Sequence record: OP557969.1
Reading direction: 5' to 3' (one strand)
DNA length: 64,000 bases
The notes under the pieces are model-generated. The model did no database searches and was not told where the DNA came from. It was given only the letters and a program-made list of their open reading frames with translations. The position numbers and the translations under genes are program-made. Each line of letters opens with the position of its first letter. The stretch's first letter is position 1. Shown one piece after another: positions 3,517-58,866 of the stretch.

Positions 3517-3807
3517 ATGATTCTTAATGATATACAATTCACATATAGAGTTTTATACATGGAGTACTCTCATACTGATCCTAAAGACTATCACTATTAT
3601 GAAACCTTTCGAACGATATGGATTGAATTTTTAGATGAATTAAAAGCGTATTACGGTAGTGTTCGTATTGTTCGTGATGGTAGAATTTACACTTGTAAAG
3701 ATGTTGTCAGTCATAGTGGTAAGCTACGATTAGAATTATATACAGAAGGACATGGTTGGATTGGTGTAAATTTACTGGATTTAGATAATGAAACACAACT
3801 TAAATGA
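3517..3807 (+). CDS. Small paralogue, family A (IQFTY subfamily)
   Basis: MILNDIQFTY; SD AAGGA. Confidence 0.8.
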   Translation: MILNDIQFTYRVLYMEYSHTDPKDYHYYETFRTIWIEFLDELKAYYGSVRIVRDGRIYTCKDVVSHSGKLRLELYTEGHGWIGVNLLDLDNETQLK

Positions 3808-4066
3808 CATACAAGTGTTCTATAGCTTCGTATATGAATCTTATGCATCAGAAGGTTACTATGAAAGTGTGTATTATTTTTTATGGCAACAATACCGTAC
3901 TATAGTACGAGATTTATATATAGGAAAATATATAACATACTGTGATAGTAGAATGATGTGCACAGATGTTCTTAGTTATCATGGTAGGTTGGTATTCCAG
4001 TTCGAAGACAGTGAAGGTAGTATGTCTTTAAATGTAAGAGATTTAAAAGGAGTGCATTTTGAATAA
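3788..4066 (+). CDS. Small paralogue, family A (IQFTY subfamily)
   Basis: HNLNDIQVFY ... DVLSYHGRLVFQF. Confidence 0.8.
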   Translation: MKHNLNDIQVFYSFVYESYASEGYYESVYYFLWQQYRTIVRDLYIGKYITYCDSRMMCTDVLSYHGRLVFQFEDSEGSMSLNVRDLKGVHFE

Positions 4067-4259
4067 GTGTCCATATTGTAACAGTACTCAATTAGCTCGT
4101 TTCCGTTTAGATTCAGACTGGGCCACTGGTGCTGGTGATTTCTTTCCTATCAATGATGATGCAGAATATACAGAAGAACAGCACAAAGATTTTGATAAAT
4201 CATGGCGACCTGACATTGAGTGCATTTATTGTCTTAATTGTGAGCGTATACATGACTAA
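4059..4259 (+). CDS. Small zinc-ribbon protein
   Basis: CPYC ... CLNC; TTG start after AAGGAG. Confidence 0.7.
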   Translation: MNKCPYCNSTQLARFRLDSDWATGAGDFFPINDDAEYTEEQHKDFDKSWRPDIECIYCLNCERIHD

Positions 4260-38839: not shown

Positions 38840-38942
38840 ACTTGTCATAGGGTGTAGTGCAATTGCTGCATATATGATTTTTTCACCTCCAACCAATGTA
38901 TTACTGCTAATTTGGGCGGTTGTTATATTAGCAGTACTTTAA
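38826..38942 (+). CDS. Small membrane peptide (38 aa)
   Basis: MRLAKLVIGCSAIAAYMIFSPPTNVLLLIWAVVILAVL; SD GGAG. Confidence 0.55.
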   Translation: MRLAKLVIGCSAIAAYMIFSPPTNVLLLIWAVVILAVL

Positions 38943-38973
38943 AGCACCCCATAGTGGGTGTTTTTCTTTTTTT
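38941..38973 (+). terminator. Intrinsic terminator
   Basis: AAAGCACCC/GGGTGTTTT plus long T tract. Confidence 0.85.
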
Positions 38974-39002
38974 GTACAAATAAAAAGCAATGTCTCAATT
39001 CC

Positions 39003-39044
39003 TTGATATAGGTCAAGAGAAATAACCAGCTATTACGCTATAAT
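39003..39044 (+). promoter_or_regulatory. Putative FNR-dependent class II promoter of the nrdD operon
   Basis: TTGAT-ATAG-GTCAA (9/10 match to TTGAT-N4-ATCAA) ending 22 nt before TATAAT (39039-39044). Confidence 0.6.
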
Positions 39045-39106
39045 GCTTTCTGTTGTTGTTAAATAACTTCACCCCCAGATGATTTCAAAAATACAAGGAG
39101 TGTACT

Positions 39107-40912
39107 GTGCAATTGAATAAATTATACACGGACGTAACGAATTTTCTAAACCAGAGTAATACTGATCTTACAAATGAAAACGCAAATAAAGATGCCAAAT
39201 GTGTAAATACACACAGAGATTTACTTGCTGGTATCTTATCTAAACATTATTCACAAGATGTTATTCCAAAGGATCTAATGCAGTGGCACAATGATGGATA
39301 TGGTCACATTCATGATTTGGACTACTATATTAGTCCATTAACAAACTGTTGTTTGGTTAATTATCCAGATATGCTTAAACATGGGTTTACTATCGGGTGT
39401 GCTAAAATCGAAGAACCAAAGAGTTTTAGTGTAGCATGTACGGTGCTAACACAGATTGTACAAGCTGTTGCAAGTTCCCAATATGGTGGTCAATCGTTGG
39501 CTCACATTGATGTCGGATTGGAACCTTATGTACAAAAGTCTTGGGAAAAGTTATTAGAAAAACAAAAGAAATATAATCTAAGCGATGATTTTATTGAAGA
39601 AGAATTACGAAAAGAAGTATATGATGGGTGTCAAACATTACTATATCAGACCAATTCAATGATTAGCACTAATGGACAAGCTGCATTCATTTCTCTTAGT
39701 TTAGGACTTAATACTTCCAAATTTGGAAAATTAATCACTGAACAGTACTTGAAAGTTCACGAGAATGGTTTAGGTAAAGATAAGATTACACCAGTGTTTC
39801 CTAAAGTTATTTTCTTTCTACAAGATGGTATTAACATGAATGTCAATGATAGTAATTATGATCTTAAACAGTTAGCTATGCGTTGTGCATCAAAAAGAAT
39901 CTATCCAGATTTTGTTTCAGTACCATTAAATCATAAAGTGACGGGAAGTAGTAGCACTGCGGTAACACCGATGGGCTGTCGTTCATTCTTAGGAAAATGG
40001 GAAGATTCAAATGGAAATGAACAATACAACGGTCGCTTCAATTTAGGTGTAGTTTCTATCAATTTACCACTAATTGCTCTTGAAAGTGCCTCAGATGGAG
40101 AGTTTTTTGATAAAATAGACGAGCATATGAATATTGCATATCGTGCTCAGATGAACCGCGTAGAGCGTTTAAAAGGTACAAAAGCGAAACAGAATCCAAT
40201 TTTGTTTATGGAAGGTGCATTAACACGTTTAAGTGCAGAAGAAACTATTGACAAGCTATTTTACAATGGTTATGCTAGTATTAGTATTGGTTATGTTGGA
40301 CTTGTTGAATGTTCGGAAATCCTCACTGGTTCTATCAGTAAGGAGTTTTGTATGTCAGTACTGAATTATATGAAAGTAAAATGCGATGAGTTCAAAAAAG
40401 AAAGTAATATTGCTTTTAGTCTATATGGAACTCCAGCAGAGTCGCTTTGTTATAAATTTGCACGTTGCATTGAAGCAAAATATCCTTCAGTTCTCAAACG
40501 AGATTTCATTACAAATTCATTCCATCAACCAGTATGGGTTGAAAGTTCCGCTTTTGAAAAGTGGGATTATGAGGAAAACTTTGCGTATCTAAGCAATGGT
40601 GGGAATATTAGCTATGTTGAAACACCAAACCTGGCTAATAATATACAAGCACTTGAAACATTGATCAATTATGCATATGATAAAATTCCATATTTTGGAA
40701 TTAATCAGAAAGTAGATAAGTGTTTTGAATGTAATTTTGAGGGAGAATTTAGTGTAGATAAAAATGGTTTTCATTGCCCTGTATGTAATAACAGAAATGA
40801 GCGAACAATGTCTGTTATACGTAGGGTATCTGGATATCTTAGTGCACCAAATAGTCGCCCGTTTAATAAAGGTAAACAAGCTGAAGTAATTCAGCGTATA
40901 CAGCATATGTAA
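39107..40912 (+). CDS. nrdD: Anaerobic (class III) ribonucleotide reductase, large subunit
   Basis: NENANKD, HIHDLDY, NCC, PMGCRS, TPAESLC, C-terminal CxxC..CxxC and RRVSGYL glycyl-radical motif; GTG start. Confidence 0.96.
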
Positions 40913-40923
40913 GGAGATATATT

Positions 40924-41286
40924 ATGTCAATTCAAGGTAAACAAGTAATGTCAGGTGAGCACATCGGAACCATCATGCTGGTGGATAATGATATTGCACG
41001 TATTATTGTATCTAAAACATTTTCAGAAAATGATGAAGTACTTTTGAGTACTTTTGACGGCGAAGAACTTCGTGACGTTCAGGTTAAACATGAACCTGGT
41101 ATTGAAGGTGGTCAGCATTTGAATGTAAATGTTCTATCTAAAGAACAACTCATTGATGCACAAAATAACCCTGAAAAGTATCCACAGCTTACTATTCGTG
41201 TTAGTGGTTATGCAGTACGTTTCAATTCACTAACAAAAGAACAACAAGATGATGTAATTTCTCGTACATTCACAAAAGAACTATGA
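40924..41286 (+). CDS. grcA: Autonomous glycyl radical cofactor
   Basis: [32 protein letters not shown]. Confidence 0.95.
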
Positions 41287-41612
41287 TGGATTTAAAACCA
41301 ATTGTAGTGAACAAATACAAAGAACCGTATGATGTGTACATTGGTCGTGGGTCTAAATGGGGTAACCCATTTACCCATATCAATGATAAACAGACAAAAG
41401 CCGAATTCATTGTTGCTACAAGGGAAGAATCAATTGAAAAATTCCGAGAATACATTATTGACCGTATTTCTAATGGCGAAATTAAAATTGATGATTTACT
41501 TGAATTAGCAGGTAAACGTCTTGGATGTTTCTGCAAACCAAAATCATGTCACGGCGATGTTCTTGTTGAAATAGTGAGTGCAATATTAGATGAATTACCA
41601 GACGATAATTAA
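41283..41612 (+). CDS. DUF4326-family protein
   Basis: [14 protein letters not shown] ... [20 protein letters not shown]. Confidence 0.85.
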
Positions 41613-42069
41613 AGATGACCTTATTAATGGTGAGGGGGTGAGGTGCTCCCTTTTTGTTAGTGGGTGTAGCCATTGTTGTGCCAAATGCTTCAACGAAAAG
41701 GCATGGGATTATAGAAGTGGCCAAGAGTTCAGTACTGAAACAATTGATATAATTTTAGCTGAACTCAGTAAACCGTACATTAGTGGGTTATCACTACTTG
41801 GTGGAGATCCACTAATGAAAAAGAACATCGAAACAATTTTAGAACTATGTAAAATTGTAAAAGATACTTATCCAAATAAAACTATTTGGTGCTGGAGTGG
41901 GTATACTTTAGAAGAGATTATGGATAATCATGCATCTCCAATACTGGAGTACATAGATGTATTGGTTGATGGTAAATTCATAGAAGCAGAAAAGAATTTA
42001 GAATTACCATTTAGAGGCTCTAATAATCAACGTATTCTTCGCAAAGGCGTAGATTATGCATTATCTTGA
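41590..42069 (+). CDS. nrdG: Anaerobic RNR activase (radical SAM)
   Basis: NGEGVRCSLFVSGCSHCCAKCFN, LGGDP, LVDGKF, FRGSNNQR. Confidence 0.95.
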   Translation: MNYQTIIKDDLINGEGVRCSLFVSGCSHCCAKCFNEKAWDYRSGQEFSTETIDIILAELSKPYISGLSLLGGDPLMKKNIETILELCKIVKDTYPNKTIWCWSGYTLEEIMDNHASPILEYIDVLVDGKFIEAEKNLELPFRGSNNQRILRKGVDYALS

Positions 42070-42097: not shown

Positions 42098-42121
42098 AAG
42101 CACCCTTTGGGTGCTTTTTTT
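42098..42121 (+). terminator. Intrinsic terminator
   Basis: AAGCACCC/GGGTGCTT plus T tract. Confidence 0.85.
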
Positions 42122-42128
42122 ATAATAT

Positions 42129-42136
42129 TATAAATA
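42129..42136 (+). promoter_or_regulatory. T4-type late promoter TATAAATA
   Basis: Exact match just after terminator, before the fibre-like cluster. Confidence 0.75.
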
Positions 42137-42167: not shown

Positions 42168-44867
42168 ATGGCAAATAAAATATATGGTGGTATTGATGTT
42201 ACACACAATGTCACAGTAAAAGGTAAGAGAAGTGCTCAGAGCATCAATGATGACGTATTTGATGAAAACGGCAATCTCACAATAGATGCATATACACAAA
42301 ATGATATGTTAGAAATGGTTGGTATGTTACCAATTTCTCGTTATGGTACACAAAACTATCTACCTGCTGGGGTTAATGGTACAACAGTTGGTTCTTCAGA
42401 AAATATTAATTCCAGAAATACAAAATTATTTTTGGAAGATGATAACACTTTAGTAATGTTACGTCCAGGTACTAATGGTAGTACTCAAGGTGTTTATTAT
42501 AGTTATATGACCCAAGCAGTAGGTACAACAAATACAAGTCGTATGGTTAATACTACTCGTGCATATAAACCCAATTACTTTGGTGCAGCATACGCAGTTT
42601 ATTTGTACCCAAGTAGTAATGATATTACTTGCGGTTTAGTGAGAATGGAGAATACCGATGGTACATATGTTGATAAAGTTTTTGTGTCAGATAATAATGG
42701 TACATTGAATGATGCAATGCACACTGGTATTATTCTATCAGATCATACAGCAGTACAACCTTTTGGTGCAATACAATTTGTTATTCGTGCAGAAGATGGT
42801 GCATTATATTTTTTTAGTTTAGACACACCAAATAATACTCTTAAAATATCCGTTACTAAAGTTACTTTTAGTCCAAGTAATAACCCAGGTGGTGGTACTT
42901 ATAGTATTACTAGAATTACTGGTTGGACTACAAGAACTTTTTATAATGCAATGATAGCTGATGAGAACATTGTTCCTACGATGAAAATAAATTCAACAAA
43001 TACCAATGATACTCCATACGTTTTAATTCCAAGCGGTATTATTGGGTTTGGTGTTTATATGACAGATCCAGATTTATATGTTGCACAGAGATCAGGTACA
43101 TCTACATTCAAATTTAGATTATGTGGTGATATGTGGATGAGTAATGGTAGATATGACATACGACCACAACATAGTTTTAGTATGACTTTTGATGTTGCAA
43201 CGAAGCAATGTGCACTCGATAATATGACAACGACTACACCAGTTGCTGTTTATGACAATGGTTCTAGCATGAATGCAACTGGACCTTGCTTGACAACTGA
43301 CCCATTTTATCTTCATGCAGGTGCACGTAATATTTTCAGTAATTATTGCTATATTCCATCAACAGGGGATGCGTTTTGTTCATTTTCACCAAACCTAGCA
43401 GAACCATTGAATTTATCATATGCAAAATACCCACCAAAATCTTTATTTGATTTGATGGATGTTAGAAGTGTGTCAGCAACTAATTTTATTAATGGTGTAG
43501 TAACACCAAGATTTGGTTCAGCAGTTGGGTCATACCAAGTAGGTGTAGAGTTATTACCAAATAACAGTACTAAACAATATTCAAGACGTTCTGGTGATGG
43601 TCGTTTTTTTCCATCCTATGCTGTTCATAAATCTACACCAAACTTTACATTCAAGTCGTTGAATTATGGTACAGTACCTGGTTATGAACCAACACCTGAC
43701 AGAAATTTCATAACCACACCAGAATCACGCATTTTTATAAGTTCAATATCTGGTTCAAACGTCACTACTAATGGTGGTGTTTTGGTTGCTGACATTAGAA
43801 CATCAACACCAATTAGTTTTGATTATAAAGGTAATGTACTGAATAATGGTACAATCAGTATGTCTCAAGATATAATGAATGCTATTAGGAATTCAGAATT
43901 TGCTAAAGTTGCTGGTTCTTGGGATATATCCCCAGCATCAGTAAAAACATTATCAGTTTTCGTTCCACAACAAACTGATATTCCTGTTTTCGCGGTTCTT
44001 GCTGCAACAACTAATTCCAGAGGACTATATATTCGTATGATTGAATTAGGTGTTAATACAAGAACAGGAGATATTACAACGTGGGCATTTAAACGTTTAG
44101 TACATGAAAGTGTTCAAGCTCTGGATTACAAAACTGATGCCGGATATTATCTTGATAGTGGAAGTATTGGTATTACTATATATGATGCTGGTTCTTTTTA
44201 CTTCATTGGTGGTGGTATTCCAGGTTTCTTTCCTACAGTTGGTAATACAGCTTCACCTTTTTTTCGTGCTACTGTAGATAAAGCAAGTAAGCAATTTAAT
44301 AATTTCCATATAGCTGGTAATCGACCTATCTATGCATTAGACGGTCAACCATTTGCTTTACCTGGTATTGGATTTGGTATTCTTCAAAGTATAGATCTTC
44401 AAAACAAAACTATTTTTAGAAAGTATGGAACTACATTAGAAGATTATAATGCATGGACTGATAAAGGAGATCCATTCATTTGCGTTGTTTCACAAGACGT
44501 TGCTCAAGGTTTTATTATATACTTCACTGAAGAGACACCAGTACTGATATCAGGTAAGCACTATACATTACCAATATCAAATATTGATTTAACAAAAGTG
44601 AAAGCAAATCCTGCGAATACTACATTTTATGTGTATATTAAATTAGTGCAGGGTATTGCAAAGTATCATATATCAACAACTGAATTAGCTGAAACTCAGT
44701 CAATATTCTGGATTGGTACAGTGAAAACTAATGATTTACAAATAACCGAAATTAATATCGTTAAACGTTCTCGTTTAGATCTGTTTGGTGCATCCTATGA
44801 CGCTGCCGGAAGTTCATTCCCAGTTAGTTCTGGTTTCCCTTCAGGTTCTGGTAATGTGAATTGGTAA
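42168..44867 (+). CDS. Putative virion fibre/appendage protein (long paralogue 1)
   Basis: 899 aa, Gly/Ser/Thr/aromatic-rich; shares N- and C-terminal domains with the next two ORFs; late promoter. Confidence 0.7.
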   Translation: MANKIYGGIDVTHNVTVKGKRSAQSINDDVFDENGNLTIDAYTQNDMLEMVGMLPISRYGTQNYLPAGVNGTTVGSSENINSRNTKLFLEDDNTLVMLRPGTNGSTQGVYYSYMTQAVGTTNTSRMVNTTRAYKPNYFGAAYAVYLYPSSNDITCGLVRMENTDGTYVDKVFVSDNNGTLNDAMHTGIILSDHTAVQPFGAIQFVIRAEDGALYFFSLDTPNNTLKISVTKVTFSPSNNPGGGTYSITRITGWTTRTFYNAMIADENIVPTMKINSTNTNDTPYVLIPSGIIGFGVYMTDPDLYVAQRSGTSTFKFRLCGDMWMSNGRYDIRPQHSFSMTFDVATKQCALDNMTTTTPVAVYDNGSSMNATGPCLTTDPFYLHAGARNIFSNYCYIPSTGDAFCSFSPNLAEPLNLSYAKYPPKSLFDLMDVRSVSATNFINGVVTPRFGSAVGSYQVGVELLPNNSTKQYSRRSGDGRFFPSYAVHKSTPNFTFKSLNYGTVPGYEPTPDRNFITTPESRIFISSISGSNVTTNGGVLVADIRTSTPISFDYKGNVLNNGTISMSQDIMNAIRNSEFAKVAGSWDISPASVKTLSVFVPQQTDIPVFAVLAATTNSRGLYIRMIELGVNTRTGDITTWAFKRLVHESVQALDYKTDAGYYLDSGSIGITIYDAGSFYFIGGGIPGFFPTVGNTASPFFRATVDKASKQFNNFHIAGNRPIYALDGQPFALPGIGFGILQSIDLQNKTIFRKYGTTLEDYNAWTDKGDPFICVVSQDVAQGFIIYFTEETPVLISGKHYTLPISNIDLTKVKANPANTTFYVYIKLVQGIAKYHISTTELAETQSIFWIGTVKTNDLQITEINIVKRSRLDLFGASYDAAGSSFPVSSGFPSGSGNVNW

Positions 44868-55354: not shown

Positions 55355-55362
55355 TATAAATA
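55355..55362 (+). promoter_or_regulatory. T4-type late promoter TATAAATA
   Basis: Exact match 18 nt before the ATG; SD AAGGAG in between. Confidence 0.7.
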
Positions 55363-58289: not shown

Positions 58290-58866
58290 ATTAGTATATT
58301 ACTATGGTAGTATGTCTAGTGGTAAAAGTACTCATCTTTTGCAAAAAGCATATAACCATAAGAAAAATGGAATGAAGGTAATTTACTTAACCAGTGCACT
58401 TGATGATCGTTATGGAACTGGAAAGATTACTTCAAGGATTGGCATCGAAGCTGAGGCTGAAGTAATTCCAAAAAATGACATTAGTGTTCTTCTTAAAGTT
58501 AAAGAAACTCTCAATAATGATGTTGACATTAACAGTATCTATGTTGATGAATGTCAATTTTTAAACAGGGAACAGATTGACCATTTAGCTGATATCGCAG
58601 ATAATTATGGTGTTGATGTTTCTTGTTATGGAATCCGAACAGATTTTGAATCCAACCTATTTGAAGGTTCACAAAGACTGTTTGAAATAGCTGATGACAT
58701 ACACGAACTTAAGAACGTGTGTGAGAATAAGAAGTGTGGTAAAGAAGCTACCATGAATGCTCGTATAGTTGAAAGTACGGAGAAAGTGTTTATTGGTGGT
58801 GACGAATCATATAAAAGCCTATGCAGAAAATGTTACAAAGACTATATGAGGAATAAAAATGGTTGA
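58282..58866 (+). CDS. tdk: Thymidine kinase (type II)
   Basis: GSMSSGKST, SRIG, YVDECQF, YGIRTDF, FEGS, GGDESYKSLCRKCY. Confidence 0.95.
   Translation: MGKLVYYYGSMSSGKSTHLLQKAYNHKKNGMKVIYLTSALDDRYGTGKITSRIGIEAEAEVIPKNDISVLLKVKETLNNDVDINSIYVDECQFLNREQIDHLADIADNYGVDVSCYGIRTDFESNLFEGSQRLFEIADDIHELKNVCENKKCGKEATMNARIVESTEKVFIGGDESYKSLCRKCYKDYMRNKNG

Follow-up and report, generated by a model that had tools for sequence, protein, structure and literature searches.

A candidate FNR-dependent promoter upstream of nrdD in Escherichia phage ph0011 and its recurrence in other virulent phages

The oxygen-responsive regulator FNR recognizes the consensus TTGAT-N4-ATCAA, and 19 of the 23 directly activated Escherichia coli promoters have the site at -41.5 +/- 4, the class II position (Myers et al., PMC3688515). 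Among these targets are yfiD (grcA), with an FNR site at -40.5, and nrdD, which is listed as an FNR target (Myers et al., PMC3688515; see also PMC4009431), and the passages of PMC4009431 that cite Boston and Atlung (2003) and Roca et al. (2008) describe the E. coli nrdDG promoter as FNR-dependent. Phage genes can likewise answer to a global regulator of the host, as do the auxiliary genes of cyanophages that are driven from pho boxes by the host PhoBR system (PMC10976474). Here we analyze a 64,000-nt stretch of DNA (the window) in which an FNR-type inverted repeat, referred to below as the box, lies upstream of nrdD, the first gene of a class III (anaerobic) ribonucleotide reductase (RNR) operon. 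With 100% identity, the region matches Escherichia phage ph0011 (OP557969.1; window position = record position - 62,000), a 348-kb Rak2-like jumbo myovirus of the genus Asteriusvirus whose isolation host is E. coli. A first-pass annotation of the window had proposed that the operon is wired to host FNR, on the premises that class II sites are centred at -41.5 and that host nrdDG and grcA (yfiD) are FNR targets, both of which agree with the studies cited above. No published report of FNR in connection with phage nrdD, jumbo phages or virulent phages was found in the literature searched.

The box, its spacing and its conservation in jumbo phages

The box, TTGATATAGGTCAA, agrees with the FNR consensus at nine of the ten specified positions (Table 1). 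Only the innermost base of the right half-site departs from it, which leaves the TTGA-N6-TCAA core intact. As can be seen from the coordinates, a gap of 22 nt (39017-39038) separates the box from a perfect TATAAT hexamer. The sequence at the -35 position, AGAGAA or AAGAGA, matches TTGACA at only 1-3 of six positions, and a consensus scan called no canonical sigma-70 promoter on the + strand between 38537 and 39303. A good -10 combined with a poor -35 is what is found in activator-dependent core promoters. Counting from the -10, the predicted start of transcription would place the centre of the box (39009.5) at -41.5 to -42.5. The public runs with related sequence are DNA or metagenome contigs that cross the intergenic region and show no transcript ends, and one run marked 'RNA?' is probably DNA. 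Immediately upstream, an intrinsic terminator closes the preceding gene block, and its hairpin is retained by Asteriusvirus and 7t3-like relatives. Together with the terminator beyond nrdG, it flanks the nrdD-nrdG unit on both sides. The one-mismatch box, the 22-nt gap to a perfect TATAAT, the weak -35 and the insulating upstream terminator had all been described in the first-pass annotation, and each of them held up on re-examination.

Two other readings of the promoter sequence were considered and rejected. TTGATA, the left part of the box, is not a -35 element, because the spacer to the -10 would be 30 nt. Control by NrdR was rejected as well, since tandem NrdR boxes (acaCwAtATaTwGtgt) were not found in 38951-39110, where the best match has 6 of 14 positions mismatched.

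In order to follow the box through related phages, nrdD upstream regions were gathered from GenBank relatives and IMG/VR contigs, giving a jumbo set of 14 distinct upstream sequences from Asteriusvirus, the 7t3/fENko-Kae01 group and an Eneladusvirus-like group. NrdD identity across this set is 73-94%, whereas a large part of the intergenic DNA has diverged. In the box, nine of the ten specified columns are invariant in the 14 regions and the flanks drift; the box columns average 1.91 of 2 bits compared with 1.05 for the other 87 columns, and no other window of the region scores as high. Moreover, the mismatch seen in ph0011 is 'repaired' to the exact consensus in relatives, UE-S1 having TTGATATATATCAA, and the perfect consensus TTGATCTAGATCAA being present in 7t3, fENko-Kae01 and the Eneladusvirus group. 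A -10-like hexamer follows the box after 22 nt in Asteriusvirus and after 23 nt in the other jumbo relatives, and the 7t3 group adds a TGn extension. Whether relatives keep the box ahead of nrdD was the test that the first-pass annotation had set for itself, and its outcome is favourable. We conclude that the proposed FNR control is well supported by the comparative evidence, and we consider it likely that the nrdD operon is an insulated unit served by a -35-less, sigma-70-type promoter that depends on host FNR.

The Eneladusvirus-like contigs carry a further inverted repeat, ATACCCC-N6-GGGGTAT, between the box and the -10 (L010, ~1422-1445; also L133, L134, L136 and L145). This repeat, absent from ph0011, may serve as a second operator or have a structural role.

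Recurrence of the composite and its frequency by chance

The combination of box and -10 (the composite) was then sought in other phages with a uniform rule, namely an intact core, a -10-like hexamer at 21-23 nt and a distance of at most 150 nt from the nrdD start. Composites were found upstream of nrdD in five other lineages, with a gap of 21-23 nt in every case. Within the Stephanstirmvirinae, the carriers are Phapecoctavirus nepoznato, where the composite directly follows a terminator, and the muut-like Justusliebigvirus contig L140. The composite also precedes nrdD in Aeromonas phage PAc (a Plateaulakevirus), in the unclassified 128-kb contig L153, in Vibrio phage ICP1 and in the 117-kb contig L258, with an NrdD that shares 59% identity with the ICP1 protein. 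When anchored at the box, the flanks of these lineages show an identity to the window of 0.09-0.43, which is the random level, and they are unalignable. What the lineages have in common is the FNR consensus and its distance to the -10 only.

A first survey of 80 IMG/VR nrdD loci yielded 14 composites in 29.6 kb upstream of nrdD compared with 4 in 728 kb elsewhere, and a second survey yielded 3 near nrdD and 9 in 652 kb elsewhere. Under the uniform rule the background was 11 in 870 kb, or 0.0019 per 150 nt. At that rate, the binomial chance of at least 5 positives among about 11 lineages, as a rough count, is near 1e-11.

The box by itself is not rare. The window holds 14 boxes with at most one mismatch compared with 10.3 +/- 2.9 in shuffled sequence, and is thus not enriched for them. 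The composite of such a box, a gap of 21-23 nt and a perfect TATAAT is present once, whereas 0.08 occurrences per 64 kb, both strands counted, would be expected. In the 348-kb genome, two sites match a relaxed composite (TTGA-N6-TCAA, 21-23 nt, TANNAT), namely the nrdD site and a poor one, and the reversed-pattern control has no match; the composite upstream of nrdD is therefore the only good instance genome-wide. A pattern scan of IMG/VR for the perfect composite returned at least 118 matches, and among those sampled none adjoins nrdD, nrdG or grcA. All that this indicates is that a collection of such size will contain the pattern by chance. A second one-mismatch palindrome in the window, TTGATGAATGTCAA at 58544-58557, is likewise a GTCAA variant; it lacks a well-spaced good -10, the only candidate being CATCAT at 21 nt on the minus strand.

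Not all of the phages surveyed have the box. None was found upstream of nrdD in T4-like phages, Felix O1-like phages or Aeromonas phage AP1, nor in Vequintavirinae, in which nrdD follows a glutaredoxin gene without a spacer. T5-like phages (L217, L218) have a consensus TTGACA-17-TATAAT promoter 60-130 nt upstream of nrdD and no FNR box, and this promoter is a natural constitutive contrast to that of ph0011. In Vibrio phage Gary (L220, ~819-847), the perfect palindrome TTGATCTATATCAA stands just 9 nt before a TATAAT upstream of nrdD, and its left half-site TTGATC doubles as a -35 with a 17-nt spacer, a case which shows that the spacing criterion matters. FNR, if bound there, would more likely repress than activate.

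Three lineages have a stem-loop between the box/-10 pair and the nrdD ribosome-binding site (L140; L014, ~1160-1185; L258, 1152-1175), and that of L140 looks like a full intrinsic terminator. These stem-loops may be attenuators or 5' stabilizers, or else the promoter may be unproductive.

The candidate regulator, a second promoter element and alternative readings

The identity of the binding protein was approached from both the phage and the host side. No Crp/Fnr-type helix-turn-helix (HTH) domain is encoded by ph0011, and an identical search found the domain in 14 of 14 control genomes. The boxes in all lineages carry TTGA/TCAA, the FNR type, and never GTGA/TCAC, the CRP type. Where the host of a surveyed carrier is named, it is E. 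coli, Salmonella, Klebsiella, Erwinia or Aeromonas, and ICP1 is a Vibrio phage; all of these genera are facultative anaerobes with FNR. Because the phage has no such HTH protein, the boxes are of the TTGA/TCAA type and the hosts are facultatively anaerobic, host FNR would be the most economical reading of what binds the box.

FNR protein is present with or without oxygen, and it dimerizes and binds DNA only with an intact [4Fe-4S] cluster. Since it is always present, the sensor would already be in the cell and the phage could read the oxygen status immediately on infection, with no need for host gene expression. Under anoxia or microoxia, the [4Fe-4S] FNR dimer already present in the host would bind the box about 41.5 bp before the start, as at class II promoters, and would recruit host RNA polymerase to the TATAAT through contacts with sigma-70 region 4 and the alpha subunit. 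In an aerated host, FNR would be monomeric and the promoter weak, and the phage would fall back on NrdAB, its separate class Ia enzyme. In this way the glycyl-radical enzymes and their activase, which are oxygen-labile, would be made only where they are workable; the labile parts are the NrdG cluster and the glycyl radicals in NrdD and GrcA. A class Ia NrdA is indeed encoded far from nrdD (773-aa ORF, record 249101-250627, outside the window), which makes a switch between reductases sensible. NrdD of E. coli and T4 uses formate as reductant, and the source of formate is pyruvate formate-lyase, which GrcA repairs. Given this link, a grcA gene within the operon fits a module for anaerobic dNTP supply. 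Since the conserved box stands at an activating position and this layout recurs in several unrelated phages, these phages probably read the oxygen state of the host via FNR.

A second invariant element, TAAATAA, lies 17 nt downstream of the -10. It stands 43 nt after the box in 14 of 14 jumbo upstream regions and is followed by a semi-conserved TTCACC. Within the window, 7 of 17 TAAATAA copies are intergenic compared with 3 of 33 for the reversed control, so that the element is enriched between genes. In CBB, a Rak2-like phage that also encodes a gp55-like sigma, the late motif is (A/C)TAAATA (PMC5259590). The element at nrdD reads TTAAATAA, in which the first base differs from the published A/C and the TAAATA core is invariant. 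Outside the jumbo group TAAATAA is mostly absent, with none in the muut-like phage, PAc, L153, ICP1 or L258; a (T/A)AAATAA at a similar distance is present only in L143 and nepoznato. Since the element is invariant, intergenically enriched and similar to the CBB late motif, and since ph0011 has a sigma-70-family protein, a tandem design is likely, in which the putative FNR-dependent sigma-70 promoter is followed by a late-type promoter. In such a design, TAAATAA may act as the second promoter and contribute late transcription that does not need FNR.

A perfect T4-type late-promoter octamer, TATAAATA, is present at 42129-42136, directly past the operon terminator and 31 nt before an 899-aa T5orf172-domain gene (42168-44867). 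More copies of TATAAATA precede gene starts at 55355 (+) and 28074 (-).

Several points weigh against control by FNR as set out above. Movement of nrdD cassettes from phage to phage means that the lineages are not independent in the strict sense; even so, retention of the box against a fully diverged background implies selection. In the muut-like lineage, nrdD is separated from the box/-10 pair by a terminator-like hairpin (L140, ~1450-1480). Among the jumbo phages, conservation is weaker at the -10 hexamer, which slides by 1 nt, than at the downstream TAAATA, and in the Eneladusvirus-like contigs L134, L136 and L145 the hexamer degenerates to TATTTT or TTTTTT. As TAAATAA resembles a late motif, control by FNR may not be exclusive. 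In addition, ph0011 has a sigma-70-family protein of its own (Sigma70_r2 match in a 321-aa ORF, record 314003-314188, outside the window), which bears on how long the host sigma-70 holoenzyme serves. Finally, FNR binding, the start site, activation and oxygen dependence are all features that we infer from the DNA sequence.

There is an alternative reading in which FNR binds the box but serves the downstream TAAATA, with the box at about -62.5 in a class I-like position, or in which it modulates or represses a late promoter used by a phage sigma of the gp55 type. The fixed 43-nt distance between the box and TAAATA (39060-39065) in all jumbo relatives, set against a TATAAT that slides and degenerates, speaks for it, as do the recurrence of nTAAATA 25-50 nt upstream of several other gene starts in the window and the match to the late motif of CBB with its gp55-like sigma (PMC5259590). 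We nevertheless regard it as unlikely. Sigma-70 needs a T at -7, which TAAATA does not have, and it is through the sigma-70 holoenzyme that FNR acts; class I FNR promoters are rare, at 1 of 23 (PMC3688515); and the lineages all retain the 21-23 nt gap to a sigma-70 -10, whereas most of those outside the jumbo group lack TAAATA. A further reading, slightly less likely still, takes the palindrome for an operator bound by a phage-encoded or other non-FNR protein, with an incidental likeness to the FNR consensus. Many ph0011 proteins have no assigned function, and the palindrome is longer by one or two bases (CTTGA...TCAAG) in Asteriusvirus and the 7t3-like phages. These extra bases are not kept in the Eneladusvirus group, however, and unrelated lineages with different gene sets share just the FNR-consensus positions and the class II spacing. 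The absence of a Crp/Fnr-type HTH from ph0011 and the carriers' named hosts, whose genera are taken as facultative anaerobes with FNR, also argue against such an operator.

CRP and FNR recognize related palindromes and both activate from -41.5, and with spacing being equal the operon could in principle answer to carbon status instead of oxygen. The discriminating position is T and not G in every box, TGTGA/TCACA pentamers occur in none, and the genes served are anaerobic-specific. A CRP site is thus very improbable, and we rejected this reading for the wrong discriminating base in every copy. Equally, the box might be a functionless match, with nrdD transcribed by read-through or from phage-specific promoters only. 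One-mismatch boxes do occur at chance frequency in this A+T-rich genome, and the sampled IMG/VR matches to the perfect composite, which are all away from nrdD, show how readily the pattern forms in a huge viral collection. Chance would have to account, however, for the conservation of the box, its correction to consensus, its enrichment upstream of nrdD and its recurrence across lineages at the binomial probability given above, which makes this explanation barely credible.

Returning to activation by host FNR, we lean, by a modest degree, towards a more general proposal, which is that in several unrelated lineages of virulent phages a class II FNR site has each time been placed before the class III RNR or has been maintained there by selection. 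These are the Rak2-like jumbo phages, the Stephanstirmvirinae, the Aeromonas Plateaulakevirus, ICP1 and two uncultured lineages, with facultatively anaerobic gamma-proteobacteria as hosts. If so, the control of lytic-phage genes would include a general layer that has not been described before, the sensing of host oxygen through FNR, and the jumbo phages would combine it with a late-type promoter in a two-promoter design.

Gene content of the operon and comparison with known systems

The features of the locus are collected in Table 1. A Pfam scan found the four genes nrdD, grcA-like, DUF4326 and nrdG tightly packed, which is the order given by the first-pass annotation, and the nrdD call agrees with the annotation of OP557969.1. 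An NrdD with a C-terminal glycyl-radical domain (PF01228) next to a radical-SAM NrdG identifies a class III RNR operon. The product of the second gene has the marks of GrcA/YfiD, being about 120 aa long with homology to the C-terminus of PflB and the glycine motif RVSGYAV, and it is 54% identical to E. coli GrcA over 123 aa (E 9e-40). A terminator is annotated in the UE-S1 record at the place equivalent to that which closes the operon in ph0011.

Table 1. Features of the nrdD operon and its promoter region in the window (all on the + strand)
Feature	Position	Strand	Details
Intrinsic terminator, end of upstream gene block	38941-38973	+	9-pair stem, 4 G-C pairs, T tail
FNR-type inverted repeat TTGATATAGGTCAA	39003-39016	+	9/10 consensus positions
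-10 hexamer TATAAT	39039-39044	+	perfect; 22 nt after the box
Predicted transcription start	39051-39052	+	by arithmetic, 7-8 nt after the -10
TAAATAA, candidate late-type promoter or 5'UTR (untranslated region) element	39060-39066	+	invariant in the jumbo set
nrdD Shine-Dalgarno AAGGAG	39095-39100	+	read from sequence; GGAG core invariant across relatives
nrdD, class III (anaerobic) ribonucleotide reductase	39107-40912	+	601 aa; PF13597 1.4e-164, Gly_radical
grcA-like, autonomous glycyl-radical protein	40924-41286	+	120 aa; Pfam Gly_radical 1e-17
DUF4326 protein, no assigned function	41283-41612	+	109 aa; PF14216 3.2e-24; overlaps neighbours on both sides
nrdG, radical-SAM activase of NrdD	41590-42069	+	159 aa; Fer4_12 (PF13353) 2.6e-52, Radical_SAM (PF04055)
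Operon-closing terminator, AAGCACCC-TTT-GGGTGCTT and T run	42098-42121	+	read from sequence

The start codon of nrdD is GTG in ph0011 and ATG at that position in 121Q, A4, UE-S1 and more distant relatives. The middle of the operon also varies. Both grcA and DUF4326 are present in ph0011 (40924-41612), A4 and UE-S1, and grcA without DUF4326 is found in 7t3 and fENko-Kae01 (3754-4116 of the 7t3 locus, L008). In 121Q and most Asteriusvirus genomes, a single 110-aa ORF lies between nrdD and nrdG, apparently without grcA; it resembles the DUF4326 gene, judged by size and position alone (3818-4150 of the 121Q locus, L006).

The closest described promoters are the class II FNR promoters of E. coli (yfiD/grcA, and dmsA, narG and nirB at -41.5), which are like the phage promoter in consensus, in a poor -35, in a good -10 and, going by the predicted phage start, in a site at about -41.5. 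In E. coli K-12, the grcA promoter has TTGATTTAAATCAA, 22 nt and TATATA, a box-to-(-10) geometry identical to that of the phage. The two differ in that yfiD has a second FNR site at -93.5, whereas the phage promoter has a single site and is located in a virulent jumbo phage and not in a bacterial chromosome. Outside the box, the phage promoter shows no DNA similarity to the host nrdD or grcA promoters. We therefore rejected the idea that it was acquired together with a host gene.

The E. coli nrdDG operon shares with the phage the enzyme pair and the proposed regulator. Two FNR-like sites about 31 bp apart are present upstream of E. coli nrdD, at -249 and -218 from the ATG, and the host FNR sites are reportedly at -64.5 and -33.5. 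The phage has one class II site instead of two, and it has no NrdR box, of which E. coli nrdD has a pair, each with 3 mismatches. With a single class II site and no NrdR box, the architecture has not been copied from the host nrdDG promoter.

T4 resembles ph0011 in having a short NrdD (~600 aa), NrdG and a GrcA-type protein, reportedly the glycyl-radical protein Y06I (Wagner et al. 2001). The T4-like phages surveyed differ in lacking an FNR box upstream of nrdD, and T4 uses its own middle and late promoter systems. AsiA of T4-like phages remodels sigma-70 region 4, which would be incompatible with class II activation and would fit the lack of a box in this group. The T4-like phages, with no box, and the T5-like phages, with a constitutive consensus promoter, are ready natural controls, and the hypothesis is easily testable in laboratory E. 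coli.

What we describe appears to be a standard mechanism, class II FNR activation, in a new and recurrent place, the genomes of virulent phages. The usual picture of lytic phages is that of a fixed temporal programme; if the proposal is true, nucleotide supply would adjust to the oxygen state of the host. This bears on phage replication in the gut and at other low-oxygen sites, places in which these phages of E. coli, Salmonella, Klebsiella and Vibrio are under consideration for therapy. The nearest parallel among phages is provided by the cyanophage pho boxes, where an auxiliary metabolic gene of a lytic phage likewise lies behind the site of a host global regulator and its expression tracks the environment of the host. 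The signal there is phosphate and not oxygen, the regulator family, hosts and genes are different, and expression data exist, whereas our case is made from sequence. If it is true, an example based on oxygen would join the few documented phage genes under host global regulators, of which the cyanophage pho boxes are one.

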